Of a DNA stretch of 64,000 bases, positions 14,731 to 24,801 are shown piece by piece. The notes beneath the pieces were generated by a model that was given only the letters and a program-made list of their open reading frames with translations, was not told the origin of the DNA and searched no databases. The DNA is from Phaeosaccion multiseriatum (Eukaryota > Protista > Ochrophyta, other classes). Where the stretch lies: contig OZ218956.1 in NCBI GenBank assembly GCA_965112735.1, forward strand, positions 1,426,001 through 1,490,000, in the 5' to 3' direction. A program made the translations under genes and the position numbers. Position 1 is the first letter of the stretch; each line of letters opens with the position of its first letter.

Positions 14731-17700
14731 ATGGCACAGGCCTCAAAAGCCAAGTTGTTGGCGGGGCGTGCCTGTCCTCGTCTACAGCAGCTTTGGATCT
14801 GCTTCGTGTTGTTTCCCAAGATGATTTCTGCCGTAGCGGTAACTGCAGCGTCGTGCTTCTGCGGCGAGAAGCACACGTGCTTCCTGTTCAACGACGAAGT
14901 GACGTGCTGGGGTTCGAAAGACAACAATCGTGTGGGCTTCGATACGTCCTCGGACATCGGAGGTACTCCTGGGGACATGGGCAGTGGGATGACCACCGCT
15001 GAGCTCCCCACCTCGCTCAGCGCCGAGACGCCGACCTCAATCGGAGGGAGCAGCGTCTCTACGTGTATCTCCTTCTCAGACGGATCGATGTTCTGCTTTG
15101 GTAAGTGCTCTGCTCCTTTGCTGGCTTCTTTCCCGAATGACTGGTGGCTCCACATGTTTTGAATGCATGGATCAACGAGCCCGCCCCACCTCTGTCGCAC
15201 TTGAACAGGAGAAAATCTCAACGGCCAGCTCGGCATTGACAGCGAGCTCGATCAAGACTTCTCCACTCCCGACCTCACGCCGTAAGTGTACTTCCTCCTC
15301 CCAAGGAGCGCTGCCCCAGAAACACACGCACACGCACCCCCTCCCGCCACTGACCGATGCACCAACAACTTTCGTACTGTACACACCTCCACACAGCGTG
15401 ATACAAACAGGCAGCACCGTCGTTTCGGCGAGCAGCGGGCATGGTCTCCACCAGTGCGCCATCTTCTCCGGCGGCTCCTATTGCTGGGGCTCGTCGTTCG
15501 AAGGAGAGGCTGGTACAAACAAGAGGCTCACCACCGGAGAGGGAAACGACCCCGACGAGATGACTGATAATCTGGCCCCCCTCGACTTTCTTTCCAGCCG
15601 AACCGTTGAAGAGTTCGCTCTCGGCAATCTGCACACGTGCGCGCTGCTTAACGACGGAGCGGTCAGGTGAGTGAGTGAGTGAGTCAAGTCAGTCCGTCCG
15701 TCCAAACAGTGATAGATAGATATATCTGGTGTCACTCAGTCTGTTCCATCCATCCATCTCGTCCTGAACAACAAAGGACTTCTTCCAATCGATTCACTCA
15801 CTCCACAAGACCGATTTCACTTTGCCCCCCCCCCGCTCTCTACCCACAGATGCTTTGGCCGCGGAGACGAGGGCCAACTGGGTCTGGAGGCCGATACAGA
15901 TTTACTCACACCCAGCACCGGTGCAACGGACGTCGACCTCGGGACGGGTCGGACTGCAGTGCATGTGGCGGCGGGCGACAATCACTCCTGCGCCGTATTG
16001 GACACTGGGGATGTGGTGTGTTGGGGGGACAACAGCTCGGGTGAGTGACTGGACTTGGGAGGGTGTTGAGAGAGTGGAGGAGGAGGGGAGGCGGGGGGGG
16101 AGCGGTGCTTGGATGAATTTGAGCTCGGGGGCTGACTGTGCCCCTCCACCTCCCTCGGGGGGCAGGAGCAGAGCATCCGCAGGCCGAGGCGACTGGAACT
16201 TGGCTGAGGTGAGGTGCAGCTGCCGATTGACACGCCACTCCCTTCCCTCCTCCCCCCCTCTCCTCCTTGCTTTCCCGCTGCTTCTCTCTCCACTCCCCAC
16301 GGGTTGCTCTCCCCCGATTGTAATGCGCACGCACGTGCACGCACACACGACGTCGACGCGTGCAGGCCAGGTAGGCACCGTCAACCCCGCCACAAGTCCG
16401 ACCGCAACCGCTCTCTGTAGGCTCAGAATATCGCGTCTTGAACAAGCGAGACTTGTCTTTCCGCAACATTGTTCCCTACCATCCCCTCCCTCACCGCCGC
16501 TTCCTGCAGCTCCAATGTCCTTCTGCCTTGTGCCATGCCTTCGTCTGGCCCTTGCTTTTTCTTGCGCTTGCTCTTGCCCATGTCCTTGCTCTTGCTCTTC
16601 TCTTATCTTGATAGCTGCTGTTGTTGTTGTCGTTGTTGCTGTTGCTGTTGTTGTTGTGGTGTGGTGGTGCTGGTGATGATGTCTCGCAGCTGGGAATTGA
16701 CTCGAGCTCGAACGTTGGTGACGCCGCAAATTCTATGGGAGACGCCCTGACTGCGGTCAATCTCGGCACCGGCCGGACAGCAGTGGCTATCTCCGGAGGG
16801 GGGGCTTTCACATGCGCCGTATTGGACAACGGTGAGGCAAGGCAAGGCAGGGATGGGCAAGTACGGTTCCTTGGGGCCTTACTGTTGTCAGGGGACTCGC
16901 AACCCAACCCAGCCTACTCCTTTGAAGTGGACCTCGTTCCTAGGCTCTGATTGATCGCACACTATCTTACTGTATTGGCAACTGTCTCTCTCCCTCCTTC
17001 CTTCCCTCCTTCCCTCCCTCCCTCCCTCCCTCCCTCCCTCCCTCCCTCCCTCCCTCCTTCCCTCCTTCCCTCCTTCCCTCCCACCCCCCTTCCCTCTCTC
17101 CCTCCCTCCCTCCCTCCCTCCTTCCCCCTGTACTGACTGTGGCGCTCACCATTGGACAGGCGGAGTCAAGTGCTGGGGAGATAACAACAGCGGGGTTTTG
17201 GGGCAGGAGTCAACTGCCAGCACTATTGGGGAAAACGCCGGGGACATGGCTGCCCTAGCGGAGGTGCGTGAGTGTCGCCAAAGGCAGAGAGGCATATGGG
17301 TAGGAGGTGACTCGCTTATCTCCAAAGGCGATGCTCCCCTTGCGTACCCCATTTCGTCCCTTAACGCTTCACCCTGCCCCAATACGTTAATGTTCCTGCC
17401 TCCCCTATTCCCTCGCACCCTCTCTCTTGTCTCTTTCCCGTGCGACAGATTGACATTGGCACAGGCCGTACCGCAGTGGCCATGTGCACTGGATATAGGC
17501 ACATGTGTGCCATCCTCGACACGAATTCCAACTTGCTCTGCTGGGGAGAGGGGGGCAAGTGAGTGAACGAACTGAAACCGAAGCGATCACCTGGATCATA
17601 TGAATACTGTTTTCTTCTCTCTCTCCCTCCCCCCCCACCCCCCCCCTCTCTCTATCTCCTGCATTTAGAAAGTGCTGCCCTGACGAGGGGCGTGAGAAAA

Positions 17701-20473
17701 GTGCTTCTTGCTTTGTTGTGAGCAGTCTATGGACCCAGTGCTGGACCCACTGCATCAGTGTGAAGCCCCATCCCCTGTCTCGGCGCCCTACTCCTCCTGA
17801 AACCCCTCCTCCACTCCACATCCTGACTGCCCCCCCTCAGCCACTTCTTTGCTCCCGGAATGCTCCTCCCTTACTGTCCGCTGCTCCTCTTCACTCCTTC
17901 TGGTCCTGACTTCTCCTCCTCCTGCTTACTCGTTTCCTTGCCCCCATCTACTGCCCCTTTGCGGTGATGTTTTGCCCGATAACTTCTCAGTGGTAGACTT
18001 GGCTCGGGGAGCACATCTGACATTGGAGACGACTCGGGAGAGATGCCTCCTGCAGAGTTGGACCTGGGATACACCAACGCTCCCACACCAGCTCCCACAG
18101 CAGCGCCGACCAGAGCTCCCACAGCAGCTCCGACCGTAGCACCGACAGCAGCTCCGACCGTAGCACCCACAGCCGCACCAACTGCCGTGCCGACTCAGGT
18201 TTGTTTTGCCATTACTAATTGACCGCTGTTAGCATAGCCAGACCAGCTGACTAAGCTAAGGGAATTTCTTTGTTTCTCATTCTTGTGTTGTCCCGAATCG
18301 CCTTGCTCAGGCGCCTACGGCTGCTCCGAGCGTGGCCCCAACCTTAGCCCCGACTCAGGTTCGTGCTGGCATTTCTTGGCTCTCCTTCATCATCCTTGCT
18401 CGCTCGTTCTCTAACTAGCCCACCTGTACCACCTTGCTTCGCCTTCCGAATGGGTTGTTCCGAATCGTCTTTCTCAGGCACCTACGACTGCCCCCACCGC
18501 CGCCCCATCTGTGGCCCCAACTCTGGTTCGTAATGGCGATTCCCTCACCCCTTCCTTACCCTGTCCCGGTGAGGCCAGTCTGTGTGACCAAACTTCTCCA
18601 TGCGTTTCCGAATCGTCTTGTTCAGGCGCCTACGGCTGCTCCGACCATTGCCCCAACCTTGGCCCCGACTCAGGTTCGTGCTGTTCTCCATTGCCCATCC
18701 TTCCTTCCTCCTTCTGTCTACGTCTCTGTTGTAGACCGGCGTGTACAATCTCTGTCCTCCTCCGCTGTTGCCCTTTCTCGAATGGTCTTGCTCAGGCGCC
18801 TGCTTGCTCCGACCGCTGCCCCAACCTTAGCTAAGCCCAGACTCAAATTCGTTTTGTCGATTGTCTTTCCTTCGCTGTGATTGCTTCCAACCCCACTTCT
18901 CATTCATGCATGTTTTCCAATTGTCGTTGTCAGGCGCCTACGGCTGCTCCGACCGCTGCACCAACTACTGCCCCGACTCAGGTTCGTTTGTGTCATGCCT
19001 GTTCCCTCCTTACTTGCTCTCCCGTGTAGTATAATCACTCTCCTCCGCTCTTGCCCGTGCTCGAATCGTCGCTCTCAGGCGCCTACGCTGGCTCCGACCA
19101 CTGCCCCAACCCTTGCCCCGACTGAGGTTCGTGTTCCCTACTACTTCGTGTTGCCTACTTCCGACTGTCCTTCGCTCCCTCCCCCTTCCTTCTGCCTCCT
19201 CCTTGTCTCCCTTTGTGGGCGCAAAGTGTGCCCCCAGTCTTCTATCCTCTGAACGGATGATAGTGACAAATCTTGCCCCCCCCCCCTCCTCCACCTCTCG
19301 TTTCCTCAGGCGCCCACAGCAGCACCAACAGCAGCACCAACAGCAGCACCAACAGCAGCACCAACAATAGCTCCAACAGCCGCCCCGACAGCAGCACCTA
19401 CAGCAGCCCCAACAGCAGCTCCAACAGCCGCCCCAAGCACAGCACCAACATTGGCCCCAACAGCAGCTCCGACACTCGAGCCGCTTCCGGACGACTTCGG
19501 TGTCGATTCTCTGAACTACCTCAACGGGACTTGCGTGCTGGTCGGTCTCGGTGCCAACACGTTTACTCCCGGCCTCCAGAGCTACTTTGTACTCGCTCTC
19601 AGAGCCCTCTCGTCGACCATGGATGCAGAACAAGTGTACATCGTCTCCATTCGTGACGTGCTCTGGACATCAGAGGAGGAGGAGACGCGCCGATTGCAGC
19701 TCCAGGCTCCTTCCGATGTCCCACCACTCTCTTCCGCACCACCACACCCGTCACCGTCACAACGGCCAGGAGCAGCAGAAGTAGCAGAAGCAGCAAGAGC
19801 GGTAGCTGCAGCGGCGCCAGCAGCCAGTTTGTCGTCTGTTCGTCGCAATGCAGCGTCCTTTCTGGGACCAAGTGAAGGGCAACAAGAAGAATGGGGAGGG
19901 GTGGGCGGCTGGAGGGAGAAGGGCGAGAAGGAGTGGGGAAGACGAGAGCAAGCGGCAGTGACGGAGATGCAAAGGCGACAGCTGTCGTCGTCAGCGACCA
20001 ATGGAAGCAGCAGCGCCGTTGAGGTGTCCTTCTTGGTGTTGGGCTTTGCCTCCGCCTCGGACTGTAGCGCCGCTGCCGCCGAGGTGTTGCAAGGGGAGAG
20101 CAGCGGTGCCCTGCAGGACTCGTTCCTATCCTATGTGGAAATCGCCAGCTTAGTCCTACGGGCAGTGTTGGACGAGACGGAGGACGGCACGCCTGTCGAA
20201 CTCATCATCCTCCTCGTCTTCGTCGCGATCGTCGGAGCAGTGCTCTTCCTCGCTTGGGCGGTCTTCTGCCTGCCCGATCTATGGGCTACGGCGAGGTACT
20301 TGACACGACGCCTGCGATACCGCCTCCCCACGGTGATGGGCGGCAAGGAGGAGGTGAAAGTGCTTGTGAACCAGAACTTCGTGGACGAAATGATCATTTC
20401 TGCTGACGTGCTCAAGGCCATGCCCCCAAGGACCCATTACTCCAACCCGCCCAGCGAGGAGAGTCTGCTCTGA
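14731..20473 (+). CDS. Type I membrane/cell-surface protein: signal peptide, RCC1-like beta-propeller repeats, APT-repeat mucin-like stalk, SEA-like domain, TM helix
   Basis: Exons 14731-15100, 15209-15281, 15397-15666, 15850-16040, 16366-16370, 16690-16831, 17160-17263, 17449-17558, 17991-18198, five 48-nt exons, and 19310-20473. Repeated HTC..L..G.V.CWG.N..GQLG motifs. TM segment LIILLVFVAIVGAVLFLAWAVFCL. Confidence 0.85.
18311..19126 (+). repeat. Tandem array of paralogous 48-nt exons with homologous flanking introns
   Basis: Exons at 18311-18358, 18478-18525, 18626-18673, 18934-18981 and 19079-19126, plus a degenerate copy at 18796-18846. Introns share the GTTCGT donor and mostly CGAATCGTC..TCAG acceptor ends. 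Confidence 0.9.
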
Positions 20474-21199: not shown

Positions 21200-21555
21200 C
21201 ATCCATCCATCCATCCATCCATCCATCCATCCATCCATCCATCCATCCATCCATCCATCCATCCATCCATCCATCCATCCATCCATCCATCCATCCATCC
21301 ATCCATCCATCCATCCATCCATCCATCCATCCATCCATCCATCCATCCATCCATCCATCCATCCATCCATCCATCCATCCATCCATCCATCCATCCATCC
21401 ATCCATCCATCCATCCATCCATCCATCCATCCATCCATCCATCCATCCATCCATCCATCCATCCATCCATCCATCCATCCATCCATCCATCCATCCATCC
21501 ATCCATCCATCCATCCATCCATCCATCCATCCATCCATCCATCCATCCATCCATC
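21200..21555. repeat. Perfect (CATC)n microsatellite, about 89 units
   Basis: Directly visible uninterrupted array. It is the source of the spurious MDGW/HPSI ORFs. Confidence 0.98.
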
Positions 21556-22223
21556 GATCAACCTCCACGAGCCACACGGCCGCGCGGAGATGACTGGAAA
21601 GACAAGAGAGAAGAGCGCTTCTCATCCCTCCATTTCCCTCTCTTTCTTTCCCTTCTCTCCCCTTTCCTTTCCTGATCCAAAGCAAGATGTGGAGTGCAGG
21701 TAGATAGGTGATTGTGCGACTTGCATGTCCATATGACTGCCTTCTGCCATTTGTGACACCGGTTGTCGCTCTCCCACTGCCGGTAGCAGCAAGGCTAGCA
21801 GGTGGTCACTCTGCCCAAGCCCATCACCTTGACTTACTTGAGCACGGGTGGGGGCAACGCAGCTGAGGCTTGGAGCTGCCAGCAAGGCTTATCCTTTCAG
21901 TGCGGATTGCCATGCGTGCATGCGTGCATGGGTGCGTGCGTGCATGTGTGCGTACGTGCGTGCGTGCGTGCGGGGCCTCCTCTCGGTAGTGCTCCTCTTC
22001 TTGCCGGCCCAGCCGCGCTGTGCAGCACCGGCATACTATATCACACTGTGCGCCACCGGCAAACCTCTGTTTGGTTCGCTTTGCTTTGATCCTTTGGGGC
22101 GCTGCTGTGGCCAGAGTGGGTCTTGCCTTCTCTACTGCAGCCCATCGCGATTGGTGAAGCCCATCGCCATGTACAGGATGGAGCAGTTGCCCCCCCCCAA
22201 GCAAGTAGCCTTGAGGGCCTGCC

Positions 22224-22686
22224 TTACTTCAGGGCCACCCGCTTACTCTTACCTGCTGGAGAGCGCTGGACTTTGGAAGCGCTACTGGTAGCTGTCGCTG
22301 CCTTGCGGCTTCCTCCTCCTCCTCCTCCTCCTCCTCCTCCTCCTCCTCCTCCTCCTCCTCCTCCTCCTCCTCCTCCTCCTCCGCTCCGGACACCACCCCC
22401 CTCAAGCCTGGTCCTGCTGTCCGCACGTCGCAATGACGGTACGACTCTGCGGCTGGACTTTCCCTGCGAAGACAGGGCTTGCCGCTTTGCGCTTCCGCTT
22501 TCAGTGCTTGGATGGGCTGCGTGCTTGCGCGTGGCCGCTGCCCCCCCTCCCCGACCCCCACCTTCCTTCCCCCGCCCTCCGCCGCCTCCCTTGGAGATAC
22601 TTAGTCTTCCGGCGCCTGCCTTGGCAGCTGCAAGTGTTTTGTTTTTAGTTGTTTGTTTTGGGGAGGGCGCGCGCGTGTGTGTGTGT

Positions 22687-22725
<39 letters not shown>

Positions 22726-24801
22726 TGTGTGTGTGTGTGTGTATGGTGGGCGTGGCAAGCACGATGGAGAGTCGAACAGTAACGTGGAACGCAAGGCCCC
22801 CATGAGAGGCCTGGAGCCGTACAAGAGCGTAGTGAAACACGTGCTGTGCGTGGCTGGGCTCCATCTCTTTTATAAAGGTAAGCACTATTCGCCCCCCCCC
22901 CCCCTGCTGCCCGACGGCTCACGTACTCACCCGCTTTGAACTTGCTAAAGCTGCCGGGCCGCTGCTGCGTGGTCCTACCTAGCGTGGGCTTTACCCCGGC
23001 CCCTCCTTCCCCCGTCCCTCGTCCTCTCAGCTTCCGTGCCGCCCTACCCGTCACGCCAGCTATGGAAGCCCTGCCGGCGCGAGCTTTGGCTGCAAAGGCG
23101 TTCATGGCCCGAATGCCAAGAATCTGCTTCTTGACGACGTTCCTCAGTCGGCGACGACTGGCCAGCGACCCCGTGAGCTCCAGAAAAGGCATGTCTTTGG
23201 TGTTGGCAAAGGGTTGGATGGGGGCGCCAGTAACCGGGTCTTTGCTCTCCATCAGTGCTAAGAACGCTCCCTGATCAACGTGCACCTATGGGGGGAAAGG
23301 GGTGTGAGATTTGGTTCCGACCAATGTCCATTGGCAGCGCGCATGTACGTACACACACATACACACAGAGGGAGAGAGAGAATCATAGGGAGAGAGATGG
23401 AACACCGCGGAATGTCTGCCCCACCTGCATGATTTGCTTCATGCTCATGAAATCCCCATTGGTGAGTTTGACTCTGCGAGATGCGCAGGCCTCCCAGAAC
23501 TTGACACCGAGAATCCGCTGCTGCATGAGCTGCTGCAGCATGAAGGCCGGGTACAGAAGGGCGTTGTGCGTCTTGCAAAAGTCTCGGAACTTATCGATGG
23601 TGATGCTCACGCTCATATCTCCTCCTCTCAGCTGGTCCATCACCATGAGCGCCTGTTTGTTCACGTCAAGGTCTTTCCCGTACACCTGAGAGAGAGGGAG
23701 AGGGAGAGGGAAGGAGAGAGTAGGAGAGAGAAGAGAAACAGGGAGGGAGAGAGTAAAAGTGAGCGAGAGAGAGGAAGAGGAAGTGAGCGAGAGAGAAAGA
23801 GAGAGGGAGTGAGAGAGGATTGAAGGAGGAGACGACATAAGCATGAGAGGGTCCTCAGAAAGAGTAAGGCTCGTATGATGCGGTAGGTGGCGGTGGGCGA
23901 CATGCCAACGAACATCCGCCGACTGCACCTGCCCACAACACCCACCCACTCACTCACTCACTCACTCACCTCTCTAAGCATGAGCTCGATCTCCCCCACC
24001 TCAATGCTCCCCGAGGCATCATTGTCGTAGAGGTCGAAGGCGAAGAGCGTCAAGGATGCTTGAGACAGAGTGCAGTAGTTCCACTGCAGGGAGGGGTTGC
24101 GCGGAGGGGGAGGCGGGAGGGGGGTCACTACTAGTAGAGGACATGCGAACAGATATTCACAATCAGCGTCAAAGTCACGGCCACGAGCCTCTTAAGAGAA
24201 GGGCTGTGTACTGCCACTTGTATGCACATGTACGCGTACACACTCACCAGGGACAGGACGAACTCCTTAAAGTCAATGCTTCCGGAGCCGTCCTCGTCGA
24301 AGATGCGAAAGATTCTTTTGGTGAACTTTGTCTGCTTCAGTTCCATGTACTCAAAGAGCTCCCACGTACATATCTCACCTTTGGGTGAGGGGAGAGAGAA
24401 CACAGACACAGACAGGGAGAGAGCAGACGGCCGGACGACTCAGTTGAGGGAGAGGCAGACAGCAACGAGCACAGCAACTGCACGGCAGAGGGGGAATTAG
24501 AAGGACTCTGTACCATTCAAGTCCTACATGACTCACCCGATCCGTCGTTGTCGATCTCGCTGTATGCCTCCCAGAACTTTTCCACTTCATCTGGAGAGAG
24601 CTGCAGGGCATCAAACTCTCTGGAGAGGCAGCGGACGAAAGCATGGACAAGTGGCTGTGTGGTGAGAAAGCTACACTAGAAGCAGCGACATACGTTCAAA
24701 GGCGACGCGATCGGGACTGCAACTCACCGCTTGTGCGCTCGGATGTTGATATTGGCATCGTAGATCGTGCGCTTTCTGAAGACGCTGCCCGACTGCCCCA
24801 T
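22224..24801 (-). CDS. Calcineurin B-like / EF-hand calcium-binding protein with N-myristoylation motif and basic C-terminal tail
   Basis: Starts MGQSGS (ATG 24801). EF loops DNDGSGEI, DEDGSGSIDFKEF and DNDASGSIEVGE are spread over GT-AG exons, followed by LLYPAFMLQ..MQQRILGVKFWE. The 3' end is uncertain (22224, or 21824 if a further short intron exists). Confidence 0.8.

Follow-up and report, generated by a model that had tools for sequence, protein, structure and literature searches.

A gene in the stramenopile alga Phaeosaccion multiseriatum appears to assemble the middle of a disordered protein stalk from mini-exons. Five cassettes of exactly 48 nucleotides lie in tandem between the exons for a head of RCC1-type repeats and those for a membrane anchor. 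Each cassette would add 16 Ala-Pro-Thr-rich residues to the stalk. Gene conversion has homogenised the segment that carries them among four receptor paralogues. Here we describe the cassettes, the duplicated unit to which they belong and the history of the array, and we weigh several readings of how such a stalk is made and how its length is set.

The window that we analysed is a stretch of 64,000 nucleotides, positions 1,426,001-1,490,000 of contig 7 in an assembly of 67 Mb and 22 contigs. It has a G+C content of about 58% and contains many microsatellites. All protein searches were done exon by exon. Positions below are those of the window unless a contig is named.

Architecture of the gene

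The gene is read on the forward strand. Its upstream coding exons (14731-17558, boundaries approximate) encode RCC1-type repeats and a hydrophobic N-terminus, as judged from Pfam matches and from conservation in paralogues. On separate exons, RCC1_2 scores 45.9, 26.9, 23.5 and 23.0 bits (Pfam gathering cut-off 22) and RCC1 scores 38 bits (cut-off 21.7); WD40_RLD also matches pieces of the upstream exons. The exon at 17991-18198 completes the last RCC1 repeat, opens the stalk with 41 residues and ends CAG/GTTTGT in phase 0 (the slash marks the exon boundary). The last exon begins on a whole codon with 56 further stalk residues encoded by 12-nt repeats (19310-19477). It continues with a family-specific module of 240 residues beside the membrane (19478-20194), a predicted membrane helix (20195-20272) and a basic cytoplasmic tail that ends in EESLL, followed by the stop codon (20273-20473). 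The helix has a hydropathy maximum of 3.11 over 19 residues and a position conserved in the family alignment; the tail was recognized from the same alignment and from hydropathy.

Between these two exons lie the cassettes. Like both flanking exons, they match the PT disordered repeat (PF04886). Together the three parts give a stalk of about 177 Ala-Pro-Thr residues: 41 from the upstream exon, 80 from the cassettes and 56 from the last exon.

How would such a protein sit in the membrane? The hydrophobic stretch at the N-terminus is short and conserved in the paralogues, and by eye it is a candidate signal peptide. At the other end, both the helix and the basic tail that follows it are clear. 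With a clear helix and tail and a candidate signal peptide, the gene product is likely, but not proven, to be a single-pass membrane protein with its head outside. We infer both the outward orientation of the head and the glycosylated, extended state of the stalk.

Several further features of the gene and its surroundings deserve mention. Within the module at 19478-20194, a conserved core around VEVSFLVLGF is parted from the N-terminal portion by a low-complexity insert. Every complete family member ends in EESLL or SEDLL, an acidic dileucine-type C-terminus (20456-20470 in the window). The DxxLL sorting signals of cargo receptors resemble these ends. By analogy, the proteins may cycle between compartments instead of simply residing at the surface. 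One intron of the gene contains a (CTCC)35 microsatellite (16986-17126), and three more microsatellites lie downstream of the gene: (CATC)90 at 21200-21559, (TCC)24 at 22311-22382 and (GT)34 at 22675-22742.

Five live cassettes, one dead copy and the unit that was duplicated

The five cassettes occupy positions 18311-18358, 18478-18525, 18626-18673, 18934-18981 and 19079-19126 on the forward strand, with donors at 18359, 18526, 18674, 18982 and 19127. An initial annotation of this DNA had called them as five phase-0 exons of 48 nt. Our script scan and translation return the same positions and the same 16-residue peptides. All five fit the pattern AG/GCNCC.../GTTCGT, and each encodes four Ala-Pro-Thr-x units. 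Because the flanking exons end (18198) and begin (19310) on whole codons, every boundary in the array is in phase 0, and each cassette is of the symmetric 0-0 type. The statement that any subset could be skipped with the frame kept is therefore true by arithmetic, and Pfam and hydropathy agree with the annotation in placing the cassettes between the RCC1-repeat head and the membrane helix. The spacers behave differently from the cassettes. All six introns would break the frame if retained, since each contains an in-frame stop, has a length not divisible by three or, in four cases, both: the spacers cannot be coding.

A more basic question is whether the cassettes are exons at all. The whole interval 18199-19309 might be one intron of 1.1 kb in which a minisatellite derived from the stalk is decaying. 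Two close relatives, as judged by the C-terminal module, do have one PT exon between head and last exon, and for a while gene conversion could preserve the intact look of copies that have no function. A decaying repeat, however, would not be expected to look like this one. The five copies are 69-92% identical to one another, and all of them keep the length of 48 nt, the reading frame, the AG and the GTTCGT, whereas indels abound in the sequence between them. The A-P-T core is unaltered in all five. Pairwise differences among the cassettes concentrate at third codon positions, with 30, 22 and 45 at positions 1, 2 and 3. In addition, the only copy that lacks a donor, a sixth one described below, is also the only copy that has indels and a stop. 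We regard the single-intron reading as very improbable. From the bias towards third positions and the confinement of indels and stop to the donorless copy, we infer that the five cassettes are real exons, spliced into the mRNA.

The cassette pattern also recurs outside this gene. A strict form of it, 48 nt encoding (A-P-x-x)x4 between AG and GT, has 23 matches genome-wide and 0 in a reversed control, so it is not a product of chance. The window gene and its three paralogues account for 17 of the 23 matches. A second pattern, A-P-T-x-A-P-T followed by Q or E and then by GTnnG, has 46 matches genome-wide against 0 in the control. Mini-exon stalks thus recur in the genome of P. multiseriatum and, judged from these counts, would seem to be a habit of it.

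The sixth copy (18796-18846) lies inside intron 3 (18674-18933, 260 nt). It retains its acceptor, but compared with the intact copies it has suffered a net loss of 2 nt near its 5' end and an insertion of 5 nt, it contains an in-frame TAA, and its donor is destroyed, reading CAA/AT where the intact copies read CAG/GT. The annotation had described an inactivated copy with a surviving acceptor, indels, a TAA and a mutated donor, and all of these are seen.

What was duplicated, the exon or something larger? In a multiple alignment, intron homology runs the full length of the introns, well past the splice sites, with shared internal blocks. Seven intron pairs align with z = 4.5-7.6 relative to shuffled sequence. 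The introns being homologous along their length, the duplicated unit is exon plus intron, as had been proposed. Whole units of this kind, 145-170 nt long, are 60-74% identical, and on account of this low identity we consider the array old. The units have diverged too far for Tandem Repeats Finder, which did not detect the array's period of about 150 nt. A super-repeat of two cassettes, about 310 nt long, is weakly favoured (68.7% identity against 62-64% off register); we do not claim it. The best-kept stretch of non-coding sequence is the last 18 or so bases preceding each AG, which probably comprises the branch point and pyrimidine region.

Introners, mobile elements that generate introns, occur in some algae, and the introns of the array resemble one another and carry their own splice sites. 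It is conceivable that such an element inserted introns into a stalk exon that was once continuous. The similarity of the units, however, spans exon and intron together, and we give this origin almost no credence. As a candidate it was rejected when two of the introns, searched against the 67-Mb genome, matched only the equivalent sites in four paralogues.

Gene conversion and the wider family

A search of the genome for the cassette array found three further copies at 1.579-1.594 Mb of contig 7, all on the opposite strand. The three genes concerned are tandem paralogues about 6 kb apart, and they lie 136-150 kb from the window gene in inverted orientation. All four genes contain five live cassettes and one dead one, in like order and with like spacing, and the lesions of the dead copy are identical in all four. 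The array copies differ by 0-3%.

This near-identity does not extend to the rest of the window gene. In a four-way alignment the window gene is 49-77% identical to its three paralogues up to about position 17450. From there to about 19490 identity is 89-100%, introns included, and introns match as well as exons do. Past about 19490 it drops to 84%, 71%, 63% and 41%; for the two flanks together the range is 41-85%. The RCC1 exons are 72-80% identical in DNA sequence with introns that cannot be aligned; at the protein level the upstream exon pieces are 57-92% identical in the three paralogues, and their introns are not conserved. The three tandem genes are 94-100% identical to one another throughout. 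A young middle of 2 kb in an old pair of paralogues indicates that the stalk segment (~17450-19490) is a tract of non-allelic gene conversion among the four genes. The tract coincides with the stalk. Two practical consequences follow for work on these genes. Exons and introns are equally conserved within the tract, so selection on the exons cannot be demonstrated by comparing the paralogues; and with the four genes 97-100% identical over about 2 kb, short reads and primers that fall inside 17450-19490 cannot separate them.

The annotation had further suggested that recombination might tune the number of cassettes. We find no sign of this among the four genes: the near-identical arrays all contain five live cassettes plus one dead, and recombination visibly homogenises them instead. 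The only length variation lies in the block of 12-nt repeats in the last exon, which is 12 nt longer in one paralogue and 24 nt shorter in another. At a divergence of 0-3%, the fixed number of cassettes is weak counter-evidence to turnover over longer periods.

Turnover of that kind can be sought in more distant relatives. Searches with the C-terminal module found further members of the family on contigs 7, 2 and 4, in which the stalk is encoded either by a single exon of 456-750 nt or by cassettes of 36-132 nt. In the member on contig 7 at 2.545 Mb, a single PT exon of 456 nt links the RCC1 exon to the last one, and the member at 174 kb on contig 2 has one of about 750 nt in the same place. 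A second gene on contig 2, at about 165 kb, has stalk exons of approximately 60, 60, 72, 60, 120 and 84 nt. The stalk exons of the contig 4 member measure 120, 60, 60, 132, 120 and 84 nt, and two of them, 132 and 120 nt long, have the appearance of fused cassettes. By rough counts on unverified exon models, most members have a total stalk of about 170-220 residues, and one reaches about 280.

The contig 4 paralogue also contains an exon-plus-intron unit of 235 nt that is tandemly duplicated with 98% identity (C4:2259760-2260229), which we read as a very recent cassette birth. The initial annotation had spoken of birth and death of cassettes. The dead copy shared by four genes, this fresh duplication and the divergent exon layouts of the family sustain that proposal, and they support cassette birth and death over evolutionary time as a process visible, by sequence comparison, at the level of the family, where cassette fusion can be seen as well.

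Do cassettes also travel? A gene on the minus strand of contig 1 (about C1:3370120-3371340) has PT mini-exons of 36, 84, 96 and 48 nt, and the acceptor region of its 48-nt cassette is identical at 19 of 20 positions to those of cassettes 2 and 3. The gene resembles neither the RCC1 nor the C-terminal parts of the family and has no Pfam match. A cassette may have moved between this gene and the RCC1/stalk family. The window gene itself is mixed in its affinities: its head most resembles those of the three tandem paralogues, whereas two other genes have the more similar C-terminal module. Identities computed exon by exon suggest that it may be a chimera. In a tree of the C-terminal module, a long branch leads to the three tandem paralogues.

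These hints, namely the position of the conversion tract on the stalk, the contig 1 cassette and the different closest genes of head and C-terminal module, underlie a broader reading. The Ala-Pro-Thr cassettes, each equipped with conserved intron ends, might be portable linkers that can be joined in frame, the stalk might be the family's preferred junction for recombination, and skipping might add isoforms of different lengths. We hold this combination to be improbable. If it were true, heads, stalks and anchors could be homogenised or swapped among paralogues.

Outside this genome the family has almost no relatives. For the C-terminal module (19478-20194) Pfam gives no match. When the whole last exon was used in a word search, the only hits were unrelated proteins with a PT repeat of their own, and with the repeat removed the search returned no match. 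An exhaustive search of 1.84 billion representative proteins found one weak relative, P0076 (E = 1e-4), which comes from a 1.2-kb Logan contig of a related species (run SRR29999184) and is 79% identical to the last exon of a paralogue on contig 2. We rejected P0076 as evidence on splicing, as it seems to include intron sequence. If the run were assembled, stalk layouts could be compared across species. A metagenome scan for the pattern of acceptor plus exon start gave a single match, due to chance and dissimilar to the window, and our literature search turned up no publication about stramenopile membrane receptors with an RCC1 propeller. The locus belongs to a family of algal RCC1-propeller surface proteins that is nearly without relatives in public data.

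Splicing of the cassettes

The annotation had regarded the array as a spacer whose length could be tuned by splicing, and the donors are where this idea has most to commend it. The RCC1 exons use GTAAGT or GTGAGT, whereas all cassette donors read GTTCGT. Genome-wide, CAGGTTCGT is not enriched (312 occurrences against 568 in the control), and CAGGTGAGT is enriched 3.3-fold (1585 against 478). The cassette donors, differing from those of the RCC1 exons and lacking enrichment of CAGGTTCGT, are therefore atypical, and this leaves room for alternative use. Short exons of 48 nt with GTTCGT donors are also likely to be missed by gene predictors.

Might some or all cassettes then be skipped in some transcripts, so that isoforms grow or shrink by 16 residues at a time, in the manner of titin's PEVK spring? 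The cassettes are equal in length and symmetric in phase. Their donors depart from the consensus of both gene and genome, and in two cases the exonic CAG is missing as well: cassette 2 ends CTG/GTTCGT and cassette 5 ends GAG/GTTCGT. Weak donors of this sort would fit alternative use, and titin PEVK provides a precedent in which short repeated exons tune the length of a disordered segment (PMC6469411). Against regulated skipping stands the good preservation of acceptor region and donor in the five live copies of all four genes. The size of the introns argues in the same direction. Short introns are usually recognized as units in place of the exons between them, and under intron recognition retention is commoner than exon skipping. 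At about 100-180 nt, the introns of the array are probably recognized in this way, and skipping would then be uncommon. On balance we find a splice-tuned stalk unlikely, if less so than the other alternatives considered above.

The account that we prefer, and think reasonably probable, is that the cassettes are spliced in constitutively and that stalk length shifts over evolution, not by regulated skipping. Its steps can be outlined from the sequence as follows. Unequal recombination or slippage would have produced tandem copies of one exon-plus-intron unit. A sixth copy decayed and now lies within the 260-nt intron. In the five live copies, selection would have preserved the length, the open frame and the splice sites. 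More recently, the stalk segment was overwritten through gene conversion with the three tandem paralogues. All five cassettes would be included constitutively in the mRNA, and the length of the stalk would evolve through birth and death of cassettes, fusion of exons and 12-nt slippage in the large stalk exons.

Comparison with known systems

Tandem arrays of one-repeat exons are known from another stramenopile alga. In Ectocarpus, the LRR-encoding ROCO genes and the TPR-encoding NB-ARC-TPR genes have one repeat per exon (Zambounis et al. 2012, PMC3341825; also PMC11378527). The type I LRR cassettes there are 72 nt long, vary in number within the family and have dead copies in introns (PMC3341825). 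The likeness to our array is close: a uniform exon length divisible by three (72 nt in Ectocarpus and 48 nt in P. multiseriatum), inactivated copies within introns that have a stop or have lost a splice site, and a copy number that varies across the family. Two differences stand out. Each Ectocarpus exon encodes a folded, ligand-binding LRR, whereas each cassette here encodes a segment of a disordered Ala-Pro-Thr stalk. Ectocarpus also has copies on the opposite strand, whereas those described here are all on the coding strand and are homogenised among paralogues by gene conversion.

Titin PEVK offers a likeness of another kind. It too is disordered and rich in proline, and the many short exons that encode it, duplicated in tandem, determine by their number how long this mechanical element is (PMC6469411). 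It differs in being part of an intracellular animal protein with documented alternative splicing, whereas the array here consists of just five cassettes, with their splicing predicted from genomic DNA. If the cassettes do prove to be alternatively spliced, a unicellular organism would offer a parallel to the way in which titin PEVK tunes its length. Of the systems compared, the Ectocarpus LRR cassettes are the closest precedent and titin PEVK is the closest functional analogy.

Two broader comparisons concern the disordered segment itself. PMC3632108 describes how, in the human genome, exons of symmetric phase encode disordered regions as units of modular evolution. The stalk shares with that pattern a disordered segment on phase-symmetric exons that can be duplicated or moved with the frame kept; what that paper reports is a statistical pattern across the human genome, and here there is one specific system. 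PT repeat linkers (PF04886) contain the same repeat and join domains in many secreted proteins. They are usually encoded in one continuous exon or in an intron-less gene, whereas in this gene mini-exons make up the middle part of the linker. Set beside these systems, the array is a clean if ordinary example of exons duplicated in tandem; its cassettes specify disordered stalk sequence and not a folded repeat.
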